In this document: positions 8,902-13,659 of the stretch, piece after piece
How positions within the stretch are numbered: position 1 is the stretch's first letter
How the letters are laid out: every line of letters starts with the position of its first letter
Assembly: GCA_965649825.1 (NCBI GenBank)
Contig: OZ287706.1
Location: 372,001 to 436,000, forward strand
Source: Penicillus capitatus
Lineage: Eukaryota; Plantae; Chlorophyta
DNA: 64,000 nucleotides
Direction: 5' to 3'
The notes under the pieces: generated by a model
Databases searched by the model: none
The model's input: the letters and a program-made list of their open reading frames with translations, nothing else
Told to the model about the DNA's origin: nothing
Made by a program: the position numbers and the translations under genes

Positions 8902-9992
8902 ATGACGACAGGATGTCGGCTGTCAAATGGCGTCGTCTTGCCAGCGGTGGGACTCGGGACTTACCGAGCACGAGGCAAGAGCCTCGTCCAAGCCATTGAA
9001 TGGGCACTCGAGGCTGGGATCCAACACATCGATACGGCATTGGGCTATCGAGTCGGTTGAAGATGCCGAATCTGTCGTGATGTGACGTTTGTGTGAGATC
9101 CAGAATGCACAGTCCGTGTATGAGGGCCGAGTCGCCACCGGAAAACGCACCGATGAAATTTTCATCACGAGCAAAGTGGGCCCGGCTCATCAAGGACTCG
9201 AAGCAGCACACGAAGGCTGCGAAGAGGCACTCCGTGGACTCAAGACCGATACCTTGGTAGACGCCTGACGTCCCGTCACACAAACGAGGGATGTGTTGGA
9301 GGACTTGATGCTCATTCATTGGCCGGGAGCTCAGAGGCCGCAGTTGCACAGAAACCTGCCGAAGCTCCGACAAGAGACATGGTCTGTTTTGGAAGACTTT
9401 TATCGCGAGGGGAAGTAAGGGAGTGGATGAATGGGGGAGGTCGTAAGAAGAGGTTTGTCTGCAGTTTTCGAGCGATCGGTGTGAGCAACTATGAGATCGC
9501 ACACCTGGAGCAACTTATGAAGCATGCCACGGTCCAGCCGATGGTAAATCAGATCGAAGTGCATCCACGGTTTCCGAACAAAGAGGTTCGTGCTTTCTGC
9601 AAAGAGAACGGTGAGGCATTGAAAAGTGTGAGATTTTGAGTGAGGATCTACGGTTAAGGTATTCAGGTCGTGGCCTATTCAAGTTTTGGTCAGGGAGAGC
9701 TCACCGGTCACCCCACGATCCAGGGCATTGCCGATCGGCTGCGGAAGTCATCAGCACAGGCATGAGCGATATCTTAAGGAAGCTGAAGCGAAGCGGTCGG
9801 CTGTAGGTGTTGCTCAAATGGGCATTGCAGCAGGACATGGCTGTGATTCCGAAGTCTGTACATAGAGAGCGCATCCTGGAATGGACGCCGGAGGAGATGG
9901 AGGGATGGGAACTAACAGAAGACGACATGATGCGTATCGACGAGATGGACGACGGACACAAGTACTGCTGGAATCCTACAGAAGTCGAATGA
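8902..9992 (+). CDS. Aldo-keto reductase family protein
   Basis: LSNGVVLPAVGLGTY; IDTALGY; EIFITSK; DLMLIHWP; RAIGVSNY; NQIEVHP; AYSSFGQG; AQ|VLLKWALQQ..VIPKS. One GC-AG intron at 9760-9806. Confidence 0.92.
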
Positions 9993-10078
9993 GCTGCCTC
10001 GATAGAGCAAAGGCGGCGGCGCGGGATGTTCGTTTGATGTGACAGGTGTATGTACGTTTGTTTCGCTCGCCATGGTGC

Positions 10079-11570
10079 ATGCCGACCGAAACCGCGAACG
10101 CCATCGTGTCGCACGCACACAACGCACGGTACCGTGTCACTTCGGTCTGCATGGGAGGTCAAGGGTGACAGGGATGGCAGGAAGAGGAGCCATGTCCACC
10201 GTCGAATATTATGTTCGATCGCCGAGTGGTGCGAGGAAATACCTATGCCCCACGAATCTGTGCATCCGATGGCGCCTTCCAACGTCGCGGCATCGTCTCG
10301 AAACGCAATCTAGAGTGATCGATGCCGTCGCTGTTCCGTTTGACGCGTTCGGTGCAGAAGGCGTCCGTTATGTGGAGAGAAGTCTCCCAGTGTGCCGTCC
10401 GAGGCATCAACGCCGGCGCCTGTCGACGGTCGTCAGCATGTGGATGTCCAGACCGAAGCGCTGTATGAAGATATCTCAGACGCTTTTCCGGTTGCCGACG
10501 GCGCCACGCAGACGGATGCGTTTTTCGATCGTCCGCCGACGCCGCTCTTCATTCCTCGGAAATCCGGTGTCGATGTCGACACACAGATATATCCAGGTCA
10601 CACTTGATGATGTGACGGCAAGTGTGACCAAACGGCACGCTGTCTGCCCTAGGCGAGCTCTTCGATTTCGATTTCGAAGTCGAGCCCATCGTCGCGTATC
10701 TCGTTGGAAAGACGCTCGAACAGAGTCTGGTCGAAGTGCATGAGGAGCTCGAATTCGAAGCGCTTGAGCGCCGTCGTTATGAGATCGAGCAGACGAAGGC
10801 CTACGCCCTGGCCGATGTTGAAAAAATGGAGGCAGTTGAGAGACGTCGTATCGAAGAGAAGGATCGCCGCCTGGCGGAAGTACGCGACGATGGACGCCAC
10901 GACGTCGCGTCATTGACGATGTTCTGTAGAAACGCGAGAAGAAACGGAAGGAGGAGATCGAGCGCCAACGAGTGGCGACGTCGAGTTTCGCACGACGATG
11001 GCTCAACGATATCGTTCGCGATATTTTTGTCGATCTCGATACGAAGGGTCACTTCCGAGACCCTGTTCGCGACGACATCGAACACGATTTCGTTCCTTGG
11101 CTTCGTGCGAAAACCGATGAAAAACTGAATCGCCGTCAATCGGAGCGACAAGTACTCGAAAGGATCATCCGATCGGCATTGGAGAAGACGCAACGTGATG
11201 AGGAGACACGACGCGCCGATCATCGATCGATCGTAGCCGACGCCCGTCGCCAAGAAGAGGTCGACGCGATAACGTCGCACATCGCCTGCGCCTTGATCCA
11301 TCGTTTCTCTTCTTCCAGGCCAGGCGTCGCGAGGAAGAAGAAAAGCGTCAACATTTCGATCGACTCGTCGATGAACACGCATCTGAGCTTCTTCAGCTGA
11401 CGGATCCCGCCTTGGCAGCGGCGGAGGTTATCGAAGAGACGAAGGAGGCGATGGATGGCGACATAACTGACGCCGATATCGTTCATGCGCTGCTGCGCAA
11501 CGGCATCGTGACGAAAGAACACGTCGTCGATCGAGTCAACGCCATCATCGGCGATCATTCGACATTGTGA
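10079..11570 (+). CDS. RSP3: Radial spoke protein 3 (flagellar)
   Basis: NIMFDRRVVRGNTYA; VDGRQHVDVQT; TQTDAFFDRPPTPLFIPRKSGVDVDTQI; LFDFDFEVEPI; C-terminal ITDADIVHALLRNGIVTK, all as in Chlamydomonas RSP3 as I recall it. TGA at 11568-11570. Start codon inferred. Confidence 0.93.
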
Positions 11571-12356
11571 TGCGCGTTTTGTGTGTAAAACCGCGCTTTA
11601 TCCTTCGACGTCCGGGATATTTACGCCCGCGCTTTTGCGCTTCGGATGCGCCGGACGCTGCGCGTCGCCGTCGTGAGACGAAACGACGTCGCGGACGACC
11701 AGCCTACAAACGGAGTTCATTCGATTCGCCGCTGCGCGATGGAAACCGCGACCGGCTTATCGGCCTCCTGACCCGACGGTCCATTCACCTCAGCACTGAA
11801 GACGACGACACACATGTGCTCTTTAGATCTGCGGTCACACTTTCGTATTACTTAATGGAAACGAACGTCAATGTTCATCACTGGCTGCTTAAGTACATGA
11901 AAGACCATCCAATTCCAACGGTAGCTGCTAAGAATCTTCGACAGCTCCCACGGAGAACGGTATCTGTGTAGAAAGGTTCGTGGGAAGATGTATCGGGGGA
12001 GACTTTTTTGAGAGAGCTGCTCGGCGGCGAAGTTCAATCGACGAAATGGAGTGAGGTACTTTCATTCGTCTCTGAGACATGGCAGCGGCGTCTTGTCAGA
12101 CGAGGGATCCGATCTTTGACTGTGTGGAGCCCAGTGGCGTCGATCCGCGTAGCATTGCCCAACGCATCATGACCGTGCGCATCATCACCCTCCATCAAGA
12201 TGATGATGTGACAGCTCGATGGTGTAGATTCGCGCGGAGCTGGCAAAAGAATTTATCGAGGAGCTGCAGAACATCGCCGAAGAGAACAACGAGTTGTACA
12301 GAGAGACGCTTCAGCAATCGCTCGTCCTCAGCAGCTCAGAGGAAGACGATTCGTGA
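11570..12356 (+). CDS. Plastid-targeted RbcX-like (chaperonin-like RbcX domain) protein
   Basis: Arg/Ser/Ala-rich transit-peptide-like N-terminus, then RDRLIGLLTR|RSAVTLSYYLMETNVNVHHWLLKYM..SWEDVSGETFLRELL..VDPRSIAQRIMT|IRAELAKEFIEELQNIAEENNELYRETL. The pattern resembles algal RbcX-domain proteins from memory. TGA at 12354-12356. Confidence 0.55.
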
Positions 12357-12451
12357 CGTCTCACACTTTAAATGTGTGATCTTAATCATGGCCGTCCATT
12401 GTTTGCCTTGTATATGTCATCATTGGATGACGATGGGTGACATGGAAGACG

Positions 12452-13659
12452 TTAAGTATTGTTATCGAGCAGGCACGTGAGAAAGGCCTGTAGCGTCACG
12501 GATTTTTGCATGCCCAAGAGATCGGAAGCGGCGAAGAAGGTGCCGTCCGTATTGCCAACCATTCGCTGCATCCACCTACATTGCCCAGTGATGGTCACAC
12601 TTGTGTGACATTGCGATGACGCTACTGGTAACAGCGTTTGTCTTTCTTGGGGAAGGAAGCTGGTGGCAAGCCGGGATCACAAGGATCTAGCCGTTCCAGT
12701 CGTTCACGCGTCGCAGATTCTCCTCCCTTGCAGAACTCTTTCACATACAGAAGCGCATCGGCATAGCCGACACACAGTCCAATCCCCTCATCGACGACCG
12801 AAATCTCCACGAAGAAGTCCTTCTACACACATCACACTTATCTCACACACTCAAGACCAACGGCAACGTACGGTCGGCAACTCCAACTGAGACGAGCAAA
12901 GAATCTTCTTCGTCAACAGTCGAACCTGTCATACATACCACACATCTCACTCCTGTCACATCAAATCTCGCATGCTACCTGTCCTCTCCCTGGGGTATCC
13001 ATCTCGGCAAGGACGCGGGTGGTCAGGTCATGAAATCTCAGCAGTGTTGGTGGAATCACGTCTTTGACCTTGTCTCTTTCGACCGCCACGAGGCGTCGTC
13101 GCGGTTTTCGTCCCTCCTGTCCCATCATCTTAGCATCTGGCGATGTGCGGCGCTCCTTCTTCCAGCGAGAAGATGATGTGACATCTGAGTCTCTTCGCCG
13201 CTTAGAGCCCTCCGTTTTTCCTCCTCGGATCTCGCCTCTCAACATTGGCGTCGTCCCTTTTGCACCGCTGCGCCCTTTCAATCGAGCTTCCAGTCCATTT
13301 GGTTGATTTCTCCACGAAAATCGCTTAACATCAGACGTCACATCATCGATCTTTGAAATCACGACGGACGACATTGCCACTTCGCCGGGTAACGTCACAT
13401 CAAACTCGCGGATCTCCTGCAACGTTCTCTTGAGCGAAGGAAACTCGAGACGCAGTTGTGCAGCTCTCCTCTGACGCTCCGTCTTTTCATCCGTCTCTGT
13501 GGCTCGCCGTTTCTCCTTTTCACGCTACACGACAGCCGTCGCCTTGTCCTCCTCCACTTGTGTCATTCTTACGGAACGTGTCGCTTTGCGTTTCTTGCGA
13601 TGTTGCTTTCGCGTCAGAAACGCCTCGAGGAGTGCCGCGACCGAATTTCCGTTTTCCAT
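12452..13659 (-). CDS. Hypothetical multi-exon protein
   Basis: Minus-strand ATG (MENGNSVAALLEAFL...), several GT-AG bounded segments and protein-like exons (RLEFPSLKRTLQEIREFD; DVIPPTLLRFHDLTTRVLAEM; FFVEISVVDEGIGLCVGYADALL). No family recognised and the exon chain is uncertain. Confidence 0.35.

Follow-up and report, generated by a model that had tools for sequence, protein, structure and literature searches.

A flagellar RSP3 gene and an RbcX-like gene lie head to tail with a one-base stop/start overlap in the green alga Penicillus capitatus

In a 64,000-nucleotide (nt) stretch of the green alga Penicillus capitatus (contig OZ287706.1, positions 372,001 to 436,000; hereafter the window), the gene for radial spoke protein 3 (RSP3) runs directly into a gene for an RbcX-like protein on the same strand (Table 1). 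The window is compact, intron-rich eukaryotic sequence with a GC content of ~53%. The junction reads ...TCG ACA TTG TGA TGC GCG..., with the RSP3 stop codon TGA at 11568-11570, the start codon ATG of the downstream gene at 11570-11572 and the A common to both, and direct reading thus bears out the one-base overlap noted in a preliminary description of the window. Three related junction loci were recovered for comparison: L001, a 914-kb ENA metagenome contig; L002, from JGI sample 3300008031; and L003, from JGI sample 3300008030.

Table 1. Features at the RSP3/RbcX-like locus, in window positions.
Feature	Positions	Strand	Evidence
RSP3 (radial spoke protein 3) gene	10211..11570	+	PF06098, spliced open frame, L001 identity, C-terminal motif
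RSP3 exons	10211-10314, 10358-10596, 10653-10879, 10930-11259, 11319-11570	+	spliced model
TGATG junction	11568..11572	+	direct reading; identical in L001
RbcX-like gene	11570..12356	+	spliced open reading frame, homologues, alignments A1/A2, Pfam, profile
RbcX-like exons	11570-11778, 11827-11920, 11972-12055, 12100-12174, 12228-12356	+	spliced open reading frame
Basic, fast-evolving N-terminal presequence MRVLCVKPRFILRRPGYLRPRFCASDAPDAARRRRET	11570..11680	+	Met1 and frame conserved in 4 taxa
48-nt GT-AG intron, in-frame, stop-free	11779..11826	+	homologue alignment, L001 identity
TGTAA pentamer	11584..11588	+	present in window; TGTTTAA in L001
Local RNA hairpin enclosing UGAUG	11567..11601	+	folding; inner stem GCGCGUUUU/AAAACCGCGC at 11572-11596
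Convergent downstream gene, 3' part	12452..12928	-	tblastn of L003 minus-strand open reading frame; open reading frame list

The upstream gene comprises five exons separated by introns of 43-59 nt, and its coding sequence of 1152 nt (383 codons) is open once spliced and contains 20 ATGs counting the start, or 19 internal ones. The Pfam family PF06098 (Radial_spoke_3) matches the encoded protein at 249.4 bits (cut-off 26.4, E=3.8e-74) over profile positions 2-226 of 229. A C-terminal motif, ITDADIVHALLRNGIVTKE, lies 20-30 codons ahead of the stop within the exon that ends at the junction, and aligns (alignment A4) with VTDxDVLxxLLxxGxxTK in the RSP3 proteins of Haematococcus, Chlamydomonas leiostraca (P0085) and Bryopsis. 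Given the PF06098 match and the conserved motif there, we regard the exon ending at 11570 as the genuine last exon of RSP3; splicing to a different last exon, which would have removed the overlap, was considered and rejected. Between the window and L001, RSP3 exons are 85-91% identical and introns 75-84%. This model is least certain at its start codon and first intron. A whole-protein search for RSP3 relatives returned nothing above 48% identity, and a search with the C-terminal half gave zero matches. The best full-length match, P0067 (EukProt g7168.t1, 585 amino acids), carries a homeodomain-like tail after the C-terminal motif and may be a further case of a gene model fusing RSP3 to the gene that adjoins it downstream.

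The downstream gene encodes a protein of 196 amino acids ending at a TGA (12354-12356). We found 66 homologues, and all named ones belong to green algae (Trebouxiophyceae, Chlorophyceae, Ulvophyceae and Pedinophyceae). The Pfam family RbcX (PF02341) scores 21.9 bits against this protein, under the 27-bit gathering cut-off, while its homologues carry precomputed PF02341 matches. Because the Pfam score is sub-threshold yet a profile of the family finds AtRbcX2 (PDB 4gr6) with E=8e-6, the protein is best called RbcX-like; the original identification of the pair as RSP3 and a distant RbcX-like protein with a basic presequence is supported. Similarity to RbcX is distant but extends over both halves of the RbcX fold, and an N-terminal presequence is also shared. 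Unlike canonical RbcX, the family has its own motif: in alignment A1 conservation opens at RRRGRPAY..DSPLRDGNRDRLIGLLT (in fuller form, RRRGRPAY-x-RSSFDSPLRDGNRDRLIGLLT), ~38 codons past the ATG and earlier than the helical domain at which it had first been thought to begin. This motif is near-invariant across the family as RRxGRPA-x3-[ST]-x-D[ST]P-x-RDGNRD and is missing from canonical RbcX. Any RbcX function of the protein is putative, and the family seems to be uncharacterised across green algae. Exons of the gene are 88-95% identical to those of L001. One AT-rich (33% GC) green-algal contig with an RbcX-like gene (L009, Ga0099817_1622911) has an in-frame TAA in the conserved domain at 472-474, which fits an ulvophyte lineage reading TAA as an amino acid, or a sequencing error.

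The start of the RbcX-like gene bears directly on the overlap. Its frame extends 34 codons back from the ATG to an in-frame stop, with no other ATG in that span, and the next in-frame methionine of the spliced protein is Met80, within the conserved domain, which leaves the ATG at 11570 as the sole usable start, as first described. All 4 taxa have Met1 followed by a frame that stays open as far as the conserved motif (alignments A2 and A3), with indels only in frame (6 and 36 nt), and we therefore take the start at 11570 to be real. A distant 5' exon was also considered and discarded, as sequence upstream of the ATG in L002 and L003 is collinear with the 3' end of RSP3. The presequence is 82% identical to L001 at the nucleotide level, between the intron and exon levels, with many replacements; its composition would suit a plastid transit peptide. 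Within the presequence, with the deletion point at 11681, the window lacks 36 nt (12 codons, PGRARPYDxPK) that are present in frame in L001 (10118-10153), L002 and L003.

The preliminary description read the exon opening at 11570 as uninterrupted coding sequence and overlooked a 48-nt intron that is in frame and free of stops (11779-11826). If translated, it would add 16 residues unique in alignment A1 to the window and its close relative L001. The segment is missing from the intron-less L002 and L003, and its 75% identity to L001 matches that of other introns. Introns of this kind will mislead annotation of this genome based on open reading frames (ORFs).

Comparison with the related loci separates what is conserved at the junction from what is not. 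L001 is ~90% identical in exon nucleotides, shares its genes and introns with the window and has an identical TGATG at 9999-10003. L002 and L003 are more distant, with 73-75% amino-acid identity, and keep the gene order. In L002, 40 codons upstream of the junction carry the RSP3 C-terminal motif VSDFDIVLALLSRGVVE and end in TGA, with the RbcX-like ATG 21 nt later; in L003, 20 nt separate the RSP3 stop from the ATG. The inter-ORF distance is accordingly -1 nt for both the window and L001, against 21 nt for L002 and 20 nt for L003, and the RbcX-like frame relative to RSP3 is -1 in the window, in frame in L002 and shifted in L003. In the window the RbcX-like ATG lies 95 nt beyond the RSP3 'D-I-V' motif, and in L002 it lies 99 nt beyond it. 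This segment is thus constant in length, and only the RSP3 stop has moved. The overlap itself is a lineage-specific consequence of a stop-codon shift, and because L002 and L003 keep the order with spacers of 21 and 20 nt, the conserved trait is near-zero spacing rather than overlap. Synteny in relatives, one of the checks first suggested, is thus kept for the pairing in all three loci and for the overlap only in L001. Adjacency of RSP3 and an RbcX-like gene was not found in Pedinophyceae YPF-701, Bryopsis or Dunaliella. A metagenome scan with the RbcX-like alignment recovered 11 loci and no new junction-bearing relative; one of them, L007, is the L003 contig, and L002 was not recovered.

The pentamer TGATG is common in the window (220 observed against 201 expected). 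What is non-random about this instance is that two real, conserved genes flank it and that the same junction is present in the related genome L001.

The nature of L002 and L003 matters for how the pair is expressed. Neither has any of the 5 RbcX-like introns, and in L003 a convergent gene downstream is missing 2 introns as well. Contigs of these two JGI samples all match unbroken, while genomic records are split, with one exception (L010). Because they are intron-less while genomic records are nearly all split, L002 and L003 are probably derived from cDNA or RNA. They begin inside RSP3, only 120 and 19 nt before its stop respectively, and do not run through the gene, which is as predicted, with moderate weight, if transcription starts internally or if the abundances of the two RNAs are uncoupled. 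Searching the literature for identifiers of these JGI samples and contigs, in order to see whether they are metatranscriptomes, gave no matches.

The locus as a whole is extremely compact. The stop of an aldo-keto-reductase-like gene (AKR, named by eye) lies 218 nt ahead of the RSP3 ATG. On the other side, the convergent gene has its stop at 12452-12454, with 95 nt (12357-12451) between it and the RbcX-like stop; a tblastn comparison of the window with the minus-strand ORF of L003 placed its exon blocks at 12928-12869, 12816-12607 and 12577-12458. The spacers at the locus are thus 218, -1 and 95 nt, and L001 contains at least 13 distinct genes in 20.5 kb. The 3' untranslated regions (UTRs) of the RbcX-like gene and the convergent gene must overlap or be extremely short. 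Given 218-nt and 95-nt spacers and this gene density, transcripts must overlap their neighbours in so compact a genome. A codon-usage exon finder, meant to place all genes and intergenic distances in the window, discriminated too weakly and was dropped.

Taken together, the data suggest that these two unrelated nuclear genes, which lie head to tail without a spacer, are independently transcribed as physically overlapping units, an explanation to which we give about an even chance. We consider overlapping transcription units more likely than a special device for translational coupling. The two proteins have unrelated functions and expected regulation, with RSP3 belonging to flagellar assembly and RbcX-like to Rubisco and plastid biogenesis. 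The RbcX-like promoter and transcription start would lie inside the 3' part of RSP3 (within its final intron or exon), while polyadenylation of the RSP3 mRNA would take place inside the 5' part of the RbcX-like gene; we infer both positions from the arrangement of the genes. RbcX-like protein would then come from a shorter mRNA of its own through conventional cap-dependent scanning, and for start sites downstream of 11487 there is no upstream ATG between that position and the ATG at 11570. The TGATG overlap would be a by-product of where the RSP3 stop falls within the constant 95-99 nt segment from the D-I-V motif to the ATG.

Overlapping monocistronic units had been raised in the preliminary description as an alternative to coupling, on the strength of the TGTAA at 11584-11588, a pentamer resembling a green-algal poly(A) signal. 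The general idea is the one we favour, but this specific evidence is weak at best. The pentamer is present in the window and reads TGTTTAA in L001, occurs in the L002 spacer (130-134) but not in that of L003, and is not seen after the stop codons of AKR and the RbcX-like gene, the other two stops that could be placed. Over the whole window TGTAA occurs 66 times against 67.4 expected, a chance frequency, and as a general poly(A) signal it was rejected as unsupported. A candidate promoter word common to the AKR-RSP3 spacer and the 3' end of RSP3, AACGCCATC, was also rejected, as it is not enriched (20 against 18.8 expected with at most one mismatch).

Several points weigh against independent transcription. 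For the organism of the window it is predicted from sequence, and no promoter motif was identified inside RSP3. L002 and L003 are only probably RNA-derived, and if they are genomic their 5' ends say nothing. A 35-nt hairpin encloses the UGAUG only in the two taxa with the overlap, which could hint at a translational role. Lastly, green algae do make genuine polycistronic mRNAs, and stop and start codons overlap at some Auxenochlorella loci (PMC11291117).

These last two points lead to the foremost alternative, a true bicistronic mRNA transcribed from the RSP3 promoter, in which ribosomes ending at the UGA reinitiate at the AUG, possibly helped by the hairpin, and which we regard as possible but less likely. 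In the relatives the reinitiating AUG would lie 20-21 nt downstream. A spacing of 0 or 20-21 nt in four taxa leaves no room for a conventional terminator and promoter, and L002 physically joins RSP3 3' coding sequence to the spliced RbcX-like ORF; on the other hand, the intron-less contigs end within the last 120 nt of RSP3, and the pairing is missing from Pedinophyceae, Bryopsis and Dunaliella. With its 383 codons and 19 internal ATGs, RSP3 excludes leaky scanning, and reinitiation after long ORFs is inefficient without dedicated elements (PMC11291117). In systems that rely on a termination upstream ribosome-binding site (TURBS), a motif with a UGGGA core complementary to 18S rRNA lies within ~100 nt of the junction. 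No TGGGA (TURBS motif 1) is found in the 150 nt upstream here, although a lineage-specific equivalent may exist. The hairpin has a folding energy (dG) of -11.1 (z -2.9) in the window and -15.4 (z -4.5) in L001, and is missing, like the overlap, in L002 and L003. Structure in the 151-nt region around the junction is not unusual (z -0.09), and because short inverted repeats are frequent in the window the significance of the hairpin is uncertain; we treat it as a lead rather than a finding. A search of the window with Rfam found no RNA families. The proposal that TGATG acts as a coupling device therefore fares poorly in view of the 21- and 20-nt spacers and other frame relations of the relatives, the long ATG-rich RSP3 and the lack of a TURBS-like motif. 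The most novel version of it, a conserved cellular dicistron in which efficient UGAUG reinitiation, with a hairpin instead of a TURBS, follows a 383-codon ATG-rich flagellar ORF to yield a plastid chaperone-like protein, we consider doubtful.

It is improbable, by our estimate, that both kinds of RNA exist, with a read-through RSP3-RbcX-like RNA of the sort known in microsporidia and nucleomorphs translated for its first ORF only and RbcX-like protein made from its own shorter mRNA. The same compactness data would support such a mixture as support independent transcription, and in L003 the convergent genes share a single contig, as overlap between adjacent transcripts would predict. It is, however, a variant of independent transcription and indistinguishable from it by sequence alone. 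Least probable is a mis-modelled start, in which another exon, a non-ATG codon or an RSP3 fusion through read-through or frameshifting would make the TGATG irrelevant: the first ~37 codons do evolve fast and the preliminary description had missed an in-frame intron within this exon, but Met1 and its frame are conserved in four taxa, the next methionine falls inside the conserved domain, L002 and L003 have in-frame stops 7-8 codons ahead of the ATG in sequence collinear with the RSP3 3' end, and a fusion was ruled out by the frame relation, which differs among taxa.

The arrangement belongs among known kinds and is not a new kind. Overlapping gene expression in compacted eukaryotic genomes was reportedly described by Williams and colleagues in 2005. 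In microsporidia (Encephalitozoon) and in the nucleomorphs of cryptophytes and chlorarachniophytes, genes are so closely spaced that transcripts begin or terminate within their neighbours, and the P. capitatus pair may work in an analogous way. As in those genomes, same-strand neighbours have no usable spacer (218, -1 and 95 nt are too short for UTRs and a promoter), and each protein would be translated from the most 5' ORF of its own mRNA. In contrast to them, P. capitatus is a free-living, photosynthetic alga whose genes have many short introns (43-59 nt), rather than a reduced parasite or the nucleus of an endosymbiont, and transcript overlap here is predicted.

A second comparison is with polycistronic loci of green algae, known from Chlamydomonas, Chromochloris and Auxenochlorella (PMC7896298, PMC11291117). 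These share with our locus their occurrence in Chlorophyta, unrelated ORFs on one strand, very short spacing and collinearity kept in relatives. Green-algal bicistrons have a short, ATG-poor first ORF in weak Kozak context and work by leaky scanning (PMC7896298, PMC11291117); the median first ORF in Auxenochlorella is ~291 nt, and median inter-ORF distances are 183 nt in Chlamydomonas and 40 nt in Auxenochlorella (PMC11291117). The locus differs in its first ORF of 1152 nt, with its many internal ATGs, and a single mature, capped and polyadenylated transcript carrying both ORFs, which defines such loci, is hypothetical here.

Termination-reinitiation at overlapping stop and start codons is known from calicivirus VP1/VP2, influenza B M1/BM2 and bacterial translational coupling. 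The P. capitatus junction resembles these in having a UGAUG-type sequence after a long upstream ORF. It differs from TURBS systems in that no TGGGA lies upstream, the overlap is not conserved and the genes are a cellular nuclear pair.

Other features of the window were noted alongside the junction. The segment between the RbcX-like and convergent stops (12357-12451) is 87% identical to L001, above the intron level. A perfect 16-nt palindrome, GTCACACTTGTGTGAC, lies at 12590-12605, within one of the introns of the convergent gene, and L001 conserves it; RSP3 intron 2 (10597-10652) carries a similar inverted pair, GTCACACTTG...CAAGTGTGAC. The octamer GATGTGAC occurs at 30 sites in the window on both strands against 3.7 expected (for example 9079-9086, 10036-10043, 10609-10616, 12205-12212 and 13175-13182), with the extended consensus T-GATGTGAC-[A/G]-[G/T]. 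Where its sites could be placed they fall in short introns and spacers, often 11-25 nt ahead of an AG, and the octamer may serve this genome either as an intronic element resembling a branch region or in regulation.

Should the two genes be transcribed separately, the locus would be a clean, conserved case of promoter and poly(A) functions carried inside the coding exons of a neighbour in a free-living alga. Such pairs, which automatic annotators will tend to fuse or truncate, matter for building gene models and for understanding the limits of nuclear genome compaction. If the mRNA is instead truly bicistronic, green algae would translate a downstream ORF after a long upstream ORF, contrary to the leaky-scanning model, and the junction would offer a natural UGAUG cassette for two-gene expression in algae; reinitiation assisted by a hairpin would differ, as a mode of polycistronic translation, from leaky scanning, the one reported to date for green algae. 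Under either reading, the locus defines a green-alga-wide RbcX-like family with a distinctive N-terminal motif.

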